Sequence record: PV112478.1
Reading direction: 5' to 3' (one strand)
Length of the DNA stretch: 64,000 nucleotides
Shown here: positions 28,112-40,242 of the stretch, piece by piece
How the letters are laid out: each line of letters begins with the position of its first letter
Numbering within the stretch: the first letter of the stretch is position 1
Program-made: the position numbers and the translations under genes
The notes under the pieces: model-generated
The model's database searches: none
The model's input: the letters and a program-made list of their open reading frames with translations, nothing else
Told to the model about the DNA's origin: nothing

Positions 28112-28151
28112 AGAAACAAAAAAAAAAGAGAGGGCAAACGCCCTCTCTTTT

Positions 28152-28571
28152 TTATACGCGTTTTAGCGATTCAATTTCGATTATCGCTTCAATCTCGAAA
28201 AACATTCGGACAAAGAAAGTAGCGATAGACAGAATACCTAATAAGTACTCATGGTGAACGCAGAGCAGAATGAATAGCACCACAGCCACGATTAAACGCA
28301 GCATAACGTTCATCCCGCCAGTGAAAGTCAGATGCTTCTCTATTTTTTGGCGAAGTTTACTTTTGTTCTCTGGCGTCAGCGATATTCTTGAGAGGTCAGG
28401 GAAGGAGAAGAACTGGAAACCCAGCCAGAGTAAGCGTATTATGATCAACGTGATCACCCAGTAAATTACTGCATCCTCTAATAACGGGATTTTCGCAATA
28501 ATGAGAATAGCCAGGGCGAAGCAGGAGAACAAAGAGAGTATTTTGGAAAGTAGGGTCAGCGAGTAAAACAT
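28152..28571 (-). CDS. multi-TM membrane protein
   Basis: Four hydrophobic segments. Confidence 0.7.
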   Translation of the reverse strand: MFYSLTLLSKILSLFSCFALAILIIAKIPLLEDAVIYWVITLIIIRLLWLGFQFFSFPDLSRISLTPENKSKLRQKIEKHLTFTGGMNVMLRLIVAVVLFILLCVHHEYLLGILSIATFFVRMFFEIEAIIEIESLKRV

Positions 28572-28603: not shown

Positions 28604-28630
28604 CGTCTCCGGTTCAGAGAACCGGAGACG
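28604..28630 (-). terminator. hairpin terminator closing the three-gene exported cassette
   Basis: CGTCTCCGGTT-cagag-AACCGGAGACG. Confidence 0.65.
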
Positions 28631-28638
28631 GGAGTGGA

Positions 28639-29133
28639 TTAGTTTTCGCAGGTCAGGACAACTTTGCCTTGGATGTGAGTAGTGCCCAGCGGCATCTCTT
28701 GTGCGTCGAGGTTGATTTTCGGCGCGATAGCCAGCGTTTTGCTGTTACCCTGGATCTGCTGATTTTGAGCAGCAGCGGACCACGCGTATTCCTGGTTGTT
28801 GATGAATACGGAAGTTTGCGAACGATCGCTGATGGTCATGAGGTTATCAGCGAAGGCGAAGCGGCCGGTGTTTTGGGTCAATTTGGCTTCGGTCAGTTTC
28901 CAGCTCTGGCGAGCGGTGTTACTTTTCAGTACGAAGTTAACTGCCTTTTGATTATCGGTACCTTGCTCGCCTTTCAGAAGGATCCCGCCGGTCTGCTGAC
29001 CATTGGCAAAATCGATCCCACATGACATTTGAGTTTGAGTGTATTCTGCATCCCATACCATTTCCTGCGCAGCGAACGCAGTAGAAGACAGAGACAGTAC
29101 CAGAGCAGCCACAGCGAATTTTACGTTTTTCAT
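28639..29133 (-). CDS. exported pilin/fimbrial-subunit-like protein
   Basis: Signal peptide; N-terminal alternating strand EMVWDAEY...SCGI; C-terminal GTTHIQGKVVLTC; two Cys; beta-rich, 143 aa mature. Confidence 0.55.
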   Translation of the reverse strand: MKNVKFAVAALVLSLSSTAFAAQEMVWDAEYTQTQMSCGIDFANGQQTGGILLKGEQGTDNQKAVNFVLKSNTARQSWKLTEAKLTQNTGRFAFADNLMTISDRSQTSVFINNQEYAWSAAAQNQQIQGNSKTLAIAPKINLDAQEMPLGTTHIQGKVVLTCEN

Positions 29134-29175
29134 TTGTTTTCCAAAAGAGAGATTGAGTTAATGTTTTATTACAAC

Positions 29176-29580
29176 TTACGGATCGACACGCATCGCACGT
29201 TGAGAATCCATTTGCTGATTCTGTTCCATGCGTTCCATTTCCATCTCTAAACGACGGATCTGTAATTCTTTTTGGCGACGACTAAGATCAGCTAACCGCT
29301 CGCAGCTTTCGGCCATCTTATCGTCACCGCCTAAGGGGATACTTATACTAACATACCCGCCTTTATCGTTATCTGCATAACGATACTGACTACCATTATT
29401 TCCGTACGCCCCGACGTTAATCGTTGCTTGCGGGCGGCTGACCTCACAGCTGATATCACCGTTTTGTACGCGGCCACGATTTTCAGCTGTGTTGTTCATG
29501 ATGTAAGGCGCATCGGCAAAAGCCATTGTTGAACAAGCCAGTGTAACTGTAAAGAGTAAGACTTTATTCAACATGGACAT
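29176..29580 (-). CDS. exported protein with amphipathic beta-hairpin and C-terminal coiled coil
   Basis: Signal peptide; ATINVGAYG...GGYVSISIPLG; two Cys; heptad tail RRQKELQIRRLEMEMERME. Confidence 0.6.
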   Translation of the reverse strand: MSMLNKVLLFTVTLACSTMAFADAPYIMNNTAENRGRVQNGDISCEVSRPQATINVGAYGNNGSQYRYADNDKGGYVSISIPLGGDDKMAESCERLADLSRRQKELQIRRLEMEMERMEQNQQMDSQRAMRVDP

Positions 29581-29935
29581 TGAAGCACACCTCGGGCTGG
29601 AACTGCACGTTGGGTATTACCTGCATTGCGCAGATAGGGACGTATTTCTGTCCATTATCGTGCTGCTGGATAAATTTGTTATTGATGGTCATCGGAAAGG
29701 TCGCTCTTTCACCACCGAAAACATATTTTTTGTAGGGGATCCCTTTCTTATCCGCAATGACCTTATTCCCGACACGAAAAACAAAATCACCGGATTCTTT
29801 CGTATCGATGTACATCTCAATTTGAGAATAGCCGTCCATGCCGATAGAGTTAGTTTGGTTAACTGGACCGAAGTAGTGGGCAGAGGCATTCGCCGCAAAG
29901 AAGGCAATCCCTATTAAAGCAAAGCGTGGTTTCAT
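29564..29935 (-). CDS. exported Ig/PapD-chaperone-like protein
   Basis: Signal peptide ending ANASA|H; all-beta; C-terminal Cys pair PICA...EVCF. Confidence 0.55.
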   Translation of the reverse strand: MKPRFALIGIAFFAANASAHYFGPVNQTNSIGMDGYSQIEMYIDTKESGDFVFRVGNKVIADKKGIPYKKYVFGGERATFPMTINNKFIQQHDNGQKYVPICAMQVIPNVQFQPEVCFNVHVE

Positions 29936-29946
29936 TTTAGTTTCTC

Positions 29947-30366
29947 TTATTTACGGCGACGTTGATGGTTGTTGTTGAATTTGTTGGCGAGGGTATTAAA
30001 TGATTCCTTTGAGATTTTATTTTCTTTCAAGGAGCTGATCTCGACGACATTGCGTTTATCGTTGCAAGGCCATAAAGACTCAATCAATTCTGCGGTGTCG
30101 TCTTTTTCAAGACCACGATAAATCTCTTCTAGTATATAGTAGTCGCAGAAGGCCGCCGCATCTAAAATGAGATTTGACATTTTAGCCCCTTTGAAAGGAT
30201 ACAGCTGACTAGCAACTAATTCGCCGTCTAAAATGTAAAGCGCCACCGAAATTTTTGGTGTGGTATAAATAGCTTTGACTTTAATCTCTTTAACAGTATA
30301 AGAACTTTTATTAATAGCTTTTTGTACGTTTTCGATAGTTTTCGCAGTCAGTAACATTAATAGCAC
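29947..30366 (-). CDS. hypothetical protein
   Basis: 139-aa ORF after promoter module copy 3. Confidence 0.6.
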   Translation of the reverse strand: MLLMLLTAKTIENVQKAINKSSYTVKEIKVKAIYTTPKISVALYILDGELVASQLYPFKGAKMSNLILDAAAFCDYYILEEIYRGLEKDDTAELIESLWPCNDKRNVVEISSLKENKISKESFNTLANKFNNNHQRRRK

Positions 30367-30370
30367 TCCA

Positions 30371-30453
30371 ATAGGTTTAGTTATTTTATTTACGGAAAGG
30401 TTTTATCTTTCCTAAATCACTGTAGCTATATAGATGTTAAAAAAATTGGAGAT
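30371..30453 (-). promoter_or_regulatory. promoter module (copy 3)
   Basis: GGTTTAGTTATT...GGAAAGGTTTTATCTTTCC...GCTATATAGATGTTAAAAAAATTGGAGAT. Confidence 0.55.
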
Positions 30454-30474
30454 GGGTTCATCTCCAATTGCCTG

Positions 30475-32624: not shown

Positions 32625-33120
32625 TATCGGCCCCTTTCAGATACCCCGTTAAACGATCAACGTGCGGTTGTACCCACTCTATCGAATCGAACTCGTCGAT
32701 GTGTTCGGCCACGTAACGGATTTTCTCCGGGATAGGCTGTTTAAAGTGCTCGAGGAAGAGTTTAGCGAAACTGCACCCCAGGGCATCGATCTCCAGATAC
32801 CCGTCGATGAGCTCTTCAACGGTTACTTCATTCGCCCGATCTGCGCTATATTGAGAAAGGAGTTTCTCCAACTCAATACCGTGGGGATTAGCCGTGTCGA
32901 TAATAACGTCGGAGAGGCTTACAAAAGCATGGTTCCCGCAATCGTAAAAGATCACCTCATGTCCCCACTGCTTCGCTACCAAACCAATACATACTGCCGC
33001 CGTCCCGCAATCCCCGGAGTTAATCCGTTTAATCGCATCTTCTTTCGATTCACGGGAAAAATAGACCCGGTAAAAATCAACAAACTTATCAACAAGATTC
33101 AGGATTGATTCGGTAGGCAT
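32614..33120 (-). CDS. putative papain/transglutaminase-like Cys-His-Asp protein
   Basis: INSGDCGTAA...GNHAFVSLSDVIIDTANPHG; start re-called at MPTES with GGAG RBS. Confidence 0.55.
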   Translation of the reverse strand: MPTESILNLVDKFVDFYRVYFSRESKEDAIKRINSGDCGTAAVCIGLVAKQWGHEVIFYDCGNHAFVSLSDVIIDTANPHGIELEKLLSQYSADRANEVTVEELIDGYLEIDALGCSFAKLFLEHFKQPIPEKIRYVAEHIDEFDSIEWVQPHVDRLTGYLKGADNEQ

Positions 33121-33793
33121 TTTCAAACTCCTTGCGGTTGTTATCATCTAAGAAAAATTCCATGGCATCACGGTACCGGTGCCAGCATTGCGTATCACGG
33201 AAATGATAGATTTTATCAAGCTCAGTAATACGGTCAGTGACAAGTTTGTGAAGATGTGCGTAGTAACGTCCTTTCGGAAGAAACTGCGTAAAGATATCTT
33301 TTTCCGTGAGCCAAATTTTAAGGAAGGTGACTTCTATCCCTTCAACGTCTTTTAGGTTGTCGAGGATATCTGCCAATTTCACCGCCCACGCGTCAGGGTT
33401 AGCGGAGTTAAGGAGTTTAGTCGCCTCTAACATCGTTCGGTCTTTCCGGTTCGCTTGTATGGCTTTAGTTGTGTAGCGATCCGTAACCCAATCAACGAGT
33501 TTCAGTGTCTCATCAACCAGTTGGGTGTAATTACCGTCTATGCTATCAAACGTAAACAGCATAAAACGGAGATCCTCTAAAGAGATCTCGGTATCCTCAA
33601 CCACGTCATGTAACAGACCTGCGCAGACTACGGTGATAGGGTAGTCATTTTCCTTGAGCGTTTCACTGACGGAAAACGGATGGATGTAATAAGGTTTGTT
33701 AGACCCTTTTCTTTTTTGCCCAGTGGCAGAATGCGTTGACATCGCCACCAGATTACAAACAGAATATAATTTTCGTTCCGCTTCAGTTTTCAA
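33089..33793 (-). CDS. HD-domain small alarmone hydrolase (Mesh1/SpoT-HD-like)
   Basis: H..GQKRKGSNKPYYIHP, AGLLHDVVEDT, VTD, VKLADILDN motifs. Confidence 0.8.
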   Translation of the reverse strand: MKTEAERKLYSVCNLVAMSTHSATGQKRKGSNKPYYIHPFSVSETLKENDYPITVVCAGLLHDVVEDTEISLEDLRFMLFTFDSIDGNYTQLVDETLKLVDWVTDRYTTKAIQANRKDRTMLEATKLLNSANPDAWAVKLADILDNLKDVEGIEVTFLKIWLTEKDIFTQFLPKGRYYAHLHKLVTDRITELDKIYHFRDTQCWHRYRDAMEFFLDDNNRKEFENAYRINPESC

Positions 33794-39651: not shown

Positions 39652-40242
39652 TTATTCAACGTCCGGATTACGAGGTTGTTGTAATGCCCAATGCTTAGAA
39701 CAGACAGAAACATACTGGTCATTGCCACCCACGAGTACCTGCGGGCCGACCACTATAACATTACCTTCACTATCCAAACGCAGAACAAATCTGGCTTTTA
39801 CTCCGCACCAACAAATTGTTGGTATCTCTTCGAGCTTATCGGCTATAGCTAAAAGAACCGCACTGGCCGGGAAAGTGTTCCGTTGAAAATCTGTCCGCAA
39901 GCCGTAACACAGAACGGTGACGTCGTAGAGGTCAACGAGCGATCGAAGTTCGTAAACGTGGAATGGTTCGAGGAATTGGGCCTCGTCGACCAAAATGACT
40001 TTAGGGTAATTGCGATCCTTGTAAATGTCGTTTAGGAAAGAATCGTTTTTCCCTAACATGACACAGATACCCTCTAGCCCAATACGGGAAACCACTTTAC
40101 CTACTTTATCCCGAGTATCGACCGTCGGTTTATAGACATGAACCGACATCCCCCTTTCTCGGTAGTTGTACGCAGTTTGCAGTAGATTTGAAGATTTTGC
40201 CGAATTCATGGCACCAAATCGGAAAACTAGTGCTGACATCAA
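39652..40242 (-). CDS. tdk: thymidine kinase
   Basis: GAMNSAKS P-loop, VDEAQFL, YGLRTDF, CWCG and CSKH Zn ligands. Confidence 0.93.
   Translation of the reverse strand: MMSALVFRFGAMNSAKSSNLLQTAYNYRERGMSVHVYKPTVDTRDKVGKVVSRIGLEGICVMLGKNDSFLNDIYKDRNYPKVILVDEAQFLEPFHVYELRSLVDLYDVTVLCYGLRTDFQRNTFPASAVLLAIADKLEEIPTICWCGVKARFVLRLDSEGNVIVVGPQVLVGGNDQYVSVCSKHWALQQPRNPDVE

Follow-up and report, generated by a model that had tools for sequence, protein, structure and literature searches.

A three-gene exported module of Klebsiella phage LPKP23, related to genes of other phages and of bacterial chromosomes, may build an usher-free structure on the cell envelope

Introduction

What does a lytic phage do with three small neighbouring genes whose products all appear to be destined for the envelope of its host? 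The question is raised by a locus in Klebsiella phage LPKP23 (PV112478.1, 300.7 kb), of which we analyzed a stretch of 64,000 nucleotides, here called the window, whose coordinates are those of the record. The relatives of LPKP23 are the phiKp24-like jumbo phages of the genus Maaswegvirus; phiKp24 itself carries tubulin and nucleus-shell genes, according to the phiKp24 genome paper. The three genes, referred to here as A, B and C, are all labelled hypothetical proteins in the public record. An earlier note, made from the sequence alone, had interpreted them as a miniature pilus system made up of a chaperone, a pore-forming protein and a pilin. After comparing the trio with its relatives in cultured phages, environmental viral contigs and bacterial chromosomes, we consider it very probable that the three products form an exported and functionally linked set, and we propose with more reserve that they remodel the envelope of the infected cell.

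Results

Three consecutive genes for exported proteins

The genes lie one after the other on the minus strand, with A first and C last:

29564-29935, minus strand: gene A, an open reading frame (ORF) of 123 amino acids (aa) for a predicted exported protein with a single immunoglobulin (Ig)-like beta-sandwich
29176-29580, minus strand: gene B, an ORF of 134 aa for a predicted exported protein
28639-29133, minus strand: gene C, an ORF of 164 aa for a predicted exported protein with a pilin fold

This arrangement is as the earlier note had described it, including the 17-nt overlap of A and B (29564-29580) and the presence of a signal peptide and a Cys pair in each product. Read directly from the sequence, all three N-termini show a basic n-region, a hydrophobic core and an A-x-A site, and cleavage sites were placed by the A-x-A rule. 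Mature A, B and C contain exactly two Cys each, since the third Cys of B (Cys16) sits inside its signal peptide.

A conserved and mobile module in phages of enterobacteria

Few relatives of the trio were found in the 5.8 billion proteins searched, all from phages or metagenomes. When A, B and C were compared by tblastn with 50,697 phage genomes, the order A-B-C proved to be kept in Maaswegvirus (LPKP23, FBKp24 gp143-142-141 and Centimanus), in Miamivirus (Miami gp130-131-132), in Eowynvirus (genes 39-40-41) and in Henunavirus of the Vequintavirinae (Erwinia phage pEp_SNUABM_01 gp111-110-109), where the A gene is too divergent for tblastn, yet recognizable. Miami is a chimallin-encoding phage according to a matching publication. 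Two metagenomic phage-like contexts have the same order, with ORFs of 121/126/184 aa and 117/125/173 aa, and every enterobacterial phage carries a single C gene. The flanks of the trio are unrelated between the phage lineages. Judged from these comparisons, the trio is a conserved, mobile module present in at least four unrelated phage genera. In pEp_SNUABM_01 the cassette (L004, 3218-4441) is flanked on either side by genes of the tRNA array in which it lies, as would fit a mobile module that had inserted into a variable region.

Identity to the LPKP23 proteins (tblastn) is as follows:

A: FBKp24 64%, Miami 39%, Eowyn 36%
B: FBKp24 86%, Miami 52%, Eowyn 53%
C: FBKp24 73%, Miami 50%, Eowyn 46%

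From these values, B is the most and A the least constrained of the three.

A wider superfamily in vibriophages and environmental viruses

A profile of B, run against 1.84 billion representative sequences, returned 25 small proteins of the same plan with E-values down to 4e-49. Because of these relatives and the conservation at the protein level across genera, A, B and C are taken to be real genes and not chance ORFs. All follow one layout, in which a signal peptide and a first Cys lead into a hairpin whose loop varies; an I-P-L-G motif and another Cys come next, and the helix behind them starts with D-C-x-R-L-Y. B of the window has the features of a B-type protein, and the profile recovers the family. 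A pattern scan of IMG/VR built on the distant members yielded 220 viral contigs, of which 80 loci were kept for the analysis of gene order and gene clusters. C-like, A-like and B genes follow each other in the order C-A-B on one strand in 77 of these 80, the other three being cut by the contig end, and in all 77 uncut loci the trio is strictly adjacent, as it is in LPKP23, in the four phage genera and in vibriophages; the order there is C-A-B, as opposed to A-B-C in LPKP23. By tblastn, relatives of B were also found in 176 cultured Vibrio phages, which include the T5-like phage pVp-1, V. harveyi and V. campbellii phages of about 127 kb, and 60-83-kb phages of V. crassostreae. The earlier note had mentioned similar trios in marine phage genomes, which the 220 contigs and 176 Vibrio phages bear out, and had made the proposal dependent on co-occurrence of the three genes, which is near-exceptionless in cultured phages, metagenome contigs and IMG/VR loci.

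The pVp-1 proteins link these loci to three families of the PHROGs database, all of unknown function: phrog_25895 for C (3e-94), phrog_25455 for A (6e-86) and phrog_37374 for B (5e-76). Relatives of B match phrog_37374 at 1e-8 to 5e-76. Searched directly, only B of the window matches, and weakly (phrog_37374, E 1.3e-3, and phrog_1755, both of unknown function), A and C of the window being below detection. Profile-profile alignment with hhalign connected window A over its full length with bacterial and marine A-like proteins of the phrog_25455 type (97.1% and 95.6% probability, E 7e-11 and 1e-8), and window C with C of the phrog_25895 type over 120 columns, from the first to the last Cys (92.4%, E 5e-7); cross-controls gave 7-31%. 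With a smaller profile, window C aligned only over its last 34 columns (89%), and for this reason its relationship to the family is regarded as distant. On this evidence the LPKP23 trio is a divergent branch of the PHROG 25895/25455/37374 C-A-B module, whose families are thus already catalogued without a described function.

Several additional genes were seen at the wider loci. In the IMG/VR contigs (L047, L057 and more than 70 other loci) the module is extended: C is always preceded by two further genes, one for a Ser/Thr-rich protein (about 193 aa) whose C-terminal tail is Leu-rich and one for a secreted protein (about 304 aa), and a protein of about 185 aa with a transmembrane segment and a coiled coil usually follows B. 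ORFs whose ends resemble those of outer-membrane barrels lie just upstream of the module in the two contigs whose maps were read. The annotated B starts in pVp-1 (L111, 5680-6015) and 51E28.1 (L110, 3052-3339) are probably too far downstream: in-frame extension upstream gives a signal peptide in both and, in 51E28.1, takes in a lipobox-like L-A-A-C motif.

Other collections gave few connections. Searches of A, B and C against Pfam, NCBIfam, PADLOC and the sequences of the PDB returned nothing significant, and PDB sequences also gave no match to profiles built from the B family or from the C-like proteins of bacteria. In the plasmid collection there was neither a DNA match to the region nor a relative of window B.

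Chromosomal copies in Alphaproteobacteria and Vibrionaceae

Relatives of B are also encoded in the chromosomes of Erythrobacteraceae, Sphingomicrobium, Nitratireductor, Caulobacterales, Aliivibrio and Photobacterium, and of the bacterial loci whose ORF maps were read, each holds an A-like protein next to B as well as C-like proteins. In Qipengyuania-type genomes (Erythrobacteraceae) a C-A-B operon follows the AMP nucleosidase gene, with a short-chain dehydrogenase/reductase (SDR) gene next in some, and this is a housekeeping and not a prophage context. In Aliivibrio the order is A-B-C-x-C, adjoining a glutamate symporter gene. The cluster of Photobacterium makurazakiensis (L027, 2658-9353) holds A, B and at least six C-like paralogues, together with two larger products, of 250 and 293 aa, with the same Cys motif at the C-terminus. 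The arrangement is reminiscent of fimbrial operons that encode minor subunits and tip adhesins. Also in this large cluster of exported proteins are a 165-aa ORF whose end resembles that of an outer-membrane barrel and a 256-aa ORF with a lipobox.

Three B paralogues share one locus in Nitratireductor soli (L015, 2174-6432), where two have an A-like gene and one a C-like gene beside them, suggesting that the module is present in tandem copies. In the plasmid collection, proteins related to the Aliivibrio B are encoded on a 1.7-Mb Vibrio replicon and on plasmids of Vibrio nigripulchritudo (H120-H123). A peptide pattern of C retrieved no bacterial relatives from 185,579 species genomes, and 13 C-like proteins from bacteria, vibriophages and marine contigs had no match in Pfam; three of them, when run against NCBIfam, gave nothing meaningful.

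Protein C resembles pilins at the level of the fold

The signal peptide of C (aa 1-21) would be cleaved after residue 21, between AFA and AQ, leaving Cys38 and Cys162 in the mature protein. Two segments of C are of particular relevance:

29023-29070, minus strand: conserved N-terminal segment of mature C (aa 22-37), a candidate donor strand or N-terminal extension
28648-28686, minus strand: C-terminal strand of C (aa 150-162, G-x-T-x-I-Q-G-K...T-C), with invariant residues and a strand in the model

The AlphaFold2 (AF2) model of C, with a mean predicted local distance difference test score (pLDDT) of 82.4 and a predicted template modelling score (pTM) of 0.72, has strands at residues 38-41, 65-71, 75-87, 107-111, 114-116, 133-140 and 153-163. 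When it was compared with the PDB by Foldseek, pilins of chaperone-usher systems came first. The best match was CfaB (E 1.4e-3, probability 1.0, template modelling (TM) score 0.43-0.47), and SafA, the PapG pilin domain, FaeG, FimA/F/G/I, CsuA/B, PapA/E/H, CupE and CupB6 were also found, so that chaperone-usher pilins or chaperone-pilin complexes make up about 30 of the top 50 matches. Other polymers formed by donor strands were matched as well, namely TasA (rank 10), cannulae (rank 12) and ZP-module filaments. In the viral structure library BFVD the fold of C has counterparts in A0A2I7S9Y1 (E 1.4e-7) and A0A482ID09 (E 3e-4), two unnamed viral proteins of 157 and 176 aa. The pilin-like Ig fold that had been proposed for C is therefore recovered, at fold level only, as the top Foldseek result of a model with a pLDDT of 82, and from the model we consider it probable that C has a pilin-type fold.

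The two strand motifs pointed out in the earlier note are present and conserved. Within and next to the N-terminal segment, E24, V26 and C38 are conserved at 90% or more; in the monomer model DSSP assigns no strand to aa 22-37 (pLDDT 69-80), a state that is compatible with, though not diagnostic of, a donor strand. G150, T152, I154, Q155, G156, K157 and C162 of the C-terminal strand are invariant, and in alignments this strand coincides with the ...T-C motif at the C-terminus of the bacterial and marine C family. That C polymerizes by strand exchange is a tentative proposal, with the odds somewhat against it.

Protein A is a generic Ig-like domain

The following feature of A was assigned by reading of the sequence:

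29879-29935, minus strand: codons of the signal peptide of A (aa 1-19), with a predicted cleavage site

Cleavage would occur after residue 19, between ASA and HY, and yield a single domain of about 104 aa with Cys102 and Cys117. Its AF2 model (pLDDT 72) is an all-beta sandwich, for which Foldseek returned generic Ig/fibronectin type III (FnIII)-like domains from glycosidases, carbohydrate-binding modules and other proteins; the chaperone FimC appeared only at rank 50. No PapD-family signature and no PapD match in Pfam was found. According to the model, A is a generic single Ig-like domain and not a PapD-type chaperone. Of the earlier suggestion that A is an all-beta chaperone of about 105 aa, the size and the fold hold, and kinship with periplasmic pilus chaperones finds no support. 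As an internal control, the generic matches of A indicate that the enrichment of pilins for C is not the outcome to be expected of any beta-sandwich. A copper site like that of CopC or lytic polysaccharide monooxygenases (LPMO), formed by the mature N-terminal His of A, was considered and rejected, since the FBKp24 clade has Phe in place of this His.

Protein B is predicted to combine a stapled hairpin with a heptad helix

Three features were distinguished in B:

29515-29580, minus strand: codons of the signal peptide of B (aa 1-22), with a predicted cleavage site; the junction A-F-A-D-A-P is invariant in close relatives
29302-29448, minus strand: amphipathic beta-hairpin with a variable loop, bracketed by a predicted disulfide from Cys45 to Cys93, from the family alignment
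29206-29301, minus strand: C-terminal amphipathic heptad helix (aa 94 to about 125), from its conserved Leu/Val/Ile pattern

The signal peptide would be removed after residue 22, between AFA and DA, and the Cys residues of the precursor are Cys16, Cys45 and Cys93. In the family alignment, which comprises 84 distinct members, both mature Cys are kept in 83, at a spacing of 47-64 residues. The arms of the hairpin (53-58 and 75-83) alternate strictly in hydropathy across the 84 members, the polar face carrying conserved Glu, Arg and Thr, and Leu, Val or Ile is conserved at the hydrophobic helix positions 96, 99, 101, 106, 108, 111, 115 and 118, a heptad pattern that points to a coiled coil. The layout of hairpin and helix noticed earlier is accordingly present throughout the family. 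The sequence pattern is compatible with the role of an oligomeric pore; that B actually serves as an outer-membrane conduit we nevertheless consider unlikely. There is no conserved lipobox in A, B or C. We also rejected B as a lipoprotein: Cys16 is not conserved, whereas the A-F-A-D-A-P junction is.

No usher at the module loci read

An exported gene of usher size (about 800 aa) is present neither in the LPKP23 cassette nor at any related locus for which a gene map was read, and the gene clusters of the 80 IMG/VR contigs contain no conserved neighbour larger than about 320 aa. A candidate usher in the vibriophages, the 861-aa neighbour of the trio in pVp-1, was dismissed, as it has no signal peptide and matches the fibre-like family phrog_10818. 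Skimmer and 51E28.1 carry large genes similar to this pVp-1 gene at the same position.

Transcription and neighbouring genes in LPKP23

Gene C is followed directly by an RNA structure:

28604-28630, minus strand: stable RNA hairpin directly 3' of C, with an 11-12 bp stem, a folding free energy (dG) of -21.6 kcal/mol and z = -6.2 relative to shuffled sequences

This hairpin had been described as the terminator of the set. The structure is real, as its stability shows; it has no U-run or U-tail and was not called by the terminator scan. On the cassette strand, the scan identified canonical terminators at 30444-30469 and 28122-28153. As these flank the locus, the transcription unit may also take in the ORFs at 29947-30357 and 28152-28571. 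The former (minus strand, 136 aa, GC content 37.5%, thus low) lies between the terminator at 30444-30469 and gene A and is for this reason probably part of the same transcript as the trio; FBKp24 encodes a homologue (gp144), the module lacks this ORF at its other loci, and PHROGs gave no match. The latter (minus strand) encodes a multi-pass membrane protein of 139 aa right after the hairpin and ends at the terminator at 28122-28153; it is conserved in FBKp24 (gp140), does not accompany the cassette in other phage genera and likewise has no PHROG match.

The cassette sits within a run of small non-structural genes. Further along the same long series of minus-strand genes, the record annotates a RelA-like GTP pyrophosphokinase (33089-33793), whose FBKp24 homologue is annotated as (p)ppGpp synthetase/hydrolase, and a thymidine kinase (39652-40239). 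The GC content of gene C is 0.50, compared to 0.45 for the window, which places it in the top 9% of the segments compared; recent acquisition of C was not adopted on this basis, the shift in composition not being a strong sign.

Discussion

We favour the explanation that an envelope polymer or coat containing C is assembled by the module with no usher involved, with A as the partner of C and B as an outer-membrane anchor or exit site, and we assign it a probability of roughly 40%. Three lines of evidence lead to this preference. Pilins and donor-strand fibres dominate the structural matches of C and not those of A, and the 16 N-terminal residues of mature C lie outside its sheet. The genes are strictly linked, A and C have homologues in wider families, C-A-B operons exist in chromosomes, and the Photobacterium cluster resembles a fimbrial operon. 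Finally, B has its pattern of hairpin, loop and heptads, and no other conserved partner of the size of an export machine occurs at the loci read or among the genes conserved in the 80 viral contigs.

In this explanation, A-B-C would be the form taken in enterobacterial phages by a widespread, self-contained, Sec-exported envelope module. During infection A, B and C would be made together, A and B probably with translational coupling, and exported to the periplasm of the host, where signal peptides would be cleaved and each protein probably oxidized to form one disulfide. C would be the subunit, with a pilin-like, incomplete Ig fold, and A a small periplasmic Ig-like partner that holds or escorts it. 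B, a disulfide-stapled amphipathic hairpin joined to a short coiled coil, may oligomerize at or in the outer membrane and act there as anchor or exit site. The product would be a usher-free polymer or coat containing C on the envelope of the infected cell, and the phage might use it to change the cell surface, for instance for exclusion of other phages, receptor masking or adhesion.

A more specific version, close to the reading of the earlier note, is a complete usher-less pilus machine common to hundreds of lytic phages and to Alpha- and Gammaproteobacteria, in which C undergoes donor-strand exchange, A is a one-domain chaperone that donates a strand, and many copies of the 112-aa mature B form a conduit from a barrel of hairpins and a periplasmic collar of helices. 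We consider all of this together quite unlikely. What is likely to stand of the pilus reading is a secreted module with a pilin fold.

Some of our observations weigh against a surface polymer. C resembles pilins only in its fold (best E 1.4e-3, TM 0.35-0.47, identity 9-14%), no fimbrial model in Pfam or NCBIfam matches C, and B shows no outer-membrane beta-signal. C has many invariant polar or charged residues across relatives that are 48-99% identical. Such conservation, combined with a fast-evolving A, would be unusual for an exposed major pilin and its chaperone and fits a specific binding protein better. No description of the trio or of its families was found in the literature, and the phiKp24 structure preprint mentions neither the products of A, B and C nor virion mass spectrometry.

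The strongest rival fits this conservation. The trio might form a periplasmic or outer-membrane complex that does not polymerize, in which C binds or blocks a component of the host envelope, such as a receptor, a porin or an envelope machine, and so causes superinfection exclusion or protects progeny from debris. The single C in each enterobacterial phage and the variability of A, the highest of the three, would suit such a complex, as would the gene context in vibriophages: in the T5-like and other vibriophages the trio directly follows large fibre-like genes (phrog_10818/22875), and in pVp-1 and Skimmer it precedes the holin and endolysin genes. In T5, llp adjoins the receptor-binding gene, an arrangement that the position of the vibriophage trio recalls; T5 Llp and Cor would be functionally similar to this complex, but are unrelated to the trio. 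Non-prophage copies in the chromosomes of Alphaproteobacteria and Vibrionaceae, however, speak against it, as do bacterial clusters with many C paralogues; moreover, the structural neighbours of C are polymerizing subunits, and a conserved lipobox is missing. We regard this explanation as rather unlikely, though closer to the favoured one than any other.

The holin and endolysin genes of pVp-1 and Skimmer lie only about 0.6 kb downstream of the trio, and in the metagenome contigs L006 and L007 genes for a peptidase M15 and a Hydrolase_2 protein occur within a few kb. Together with the coiled coil of B and the transmembrane and coiled-coil protein of about 185 aa that follows B in IMG/VR contigs, this could hint at an accessory role in lysis, as a spanin-like bridge or a lysis regulator in which the periplasmic coiled coil of B, with A and C, links or disrupts the envelope layers. 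Within 10 kb of the trio in LPKP23, and in the regions fetched from Miami, Eowyn and FBKp24, however, there is no annotated lysis gene, the neighbours being almost all unnamed hypotheticals. B has a cleavable-looking A-x-A site instead of an N-terminal anchor, the trio has no conserved lipobox and no match to a PHROG spanin family, and the bacterial operons adjoin housekeeping genes. Because of these chromosomal copies, the signal peptides and the lack of spanin features, a role in lysis is very unlikely, and the same copies and signal peptides count against a role in the virion. Decoration of tail fibres or assistance in their assembly, which could be suggested by the fibre-like genes next to the trio in vibriophages and by the frequency of Ig-like folds on virions, is more improbable still, since Sec-type signal peptides and conserved Cys pairs point to the periplasm whereas tailed-phage virions assemble in the cytoplasm, the bacterial copies are not surrounded by phage genes, and the LPKP23 cassette has small non-structural genes around it.

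Should the module indeed build a surface structure, no smaller envelope fibre system would be known in Gram-negative cells, and the outer membrane would be crossed in the absence of both usher and secretin. That lytic phages as different as nucleus-forming Klebsiella jumbo phages, rV5-like Erwinia phages, T5-like and other vibriophages and the viruses behind many environmental contigs share it points to a common and undescribed remodelling of the surface of infected cells. Even if its product is not polymeric, the trio would place three uncharacterized PHROG families and the related bacterial proteins in a shared functional setting and offer a definite structural hypothesis for them.

Comparison with known systems

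The closest relatives are the three PHROG families themselves (25895, 25455 and 37374), which represent the same three-gene module; the enterobacterial-phage branch is divergent and has the order A-B-C instead of C-A-B.

Several phage-encoded exported proteins, such as T5 Llp, Cor and T4 Imm and Sp, alter the envelope of the infected cell. In contrast to the trio, these are single lipoproteins or inner-membrane proteins, whereas the module has no conserved lipobox, and no homology between them and the module was found. Spanins (Rz/Rz1) combine a coiled coil anchored in the inner membrane with an outer-membrane lipoprotein in a lysis cassette; these features were looked for in the trio and are absent.

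In the curli system (CsgA/B, CsgC, CsgE, CsgF and CsgG) the export of a surface fibre is helped by small periplasmic accessory proteins, of which CsgC is Ig-like, and the channel consists of many small subunits and not of one large barrel, CsgG being a lipoprotein of about 260 aa. The parallel with the module is an analogy only, as the curli subunit is an amyloid beta-helix and does not have an Ig fold like C, and no search gave a sequence or fold match between curli and module proteins.

Similar to what is proposed here, the usher-independent donor-strand fibres of Bacillus (TasA), the Pyrodictium cannulae and archaeal threads consist of strand-complemented subunits and have no usher. Unlike the module, they have no Gram-negative outer membrane to cross and no partners like A or B.

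With the pili of chaperone-usher systems, C shares a Sec-exported Ig-like subunit with a mature length of about 140-150 aa, a conserved N-terminal segment and a C-terminal strand. The closest in structure is CfaB of the class 5/alternate CFA/I pili, and the Saf, Fim, Pap and archaic Csu systems are also similar. Some bacterial clusters of the module resemble these systems further in having several subunit paralogues and two-domain members. Differences are that the module loci read contain neither an usher of about 800 aa nor a two-domain PapD-like chaperone (about 220 aa), that the Cys of C lie just after the N-terminal segment and at the extreme C-terminus, and that A and B have no counterpart in chaperone-usher systems. 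As an usher, a two-domain chaperone and membership of the families at sequence level were all sought and not found, the trio is not a chaperone-usher system, though it may work partly like one. Seen in this way, the module would be one of the donor-strand-type surface fibres, distinguished by new accessory proteins and the lack of an usher.

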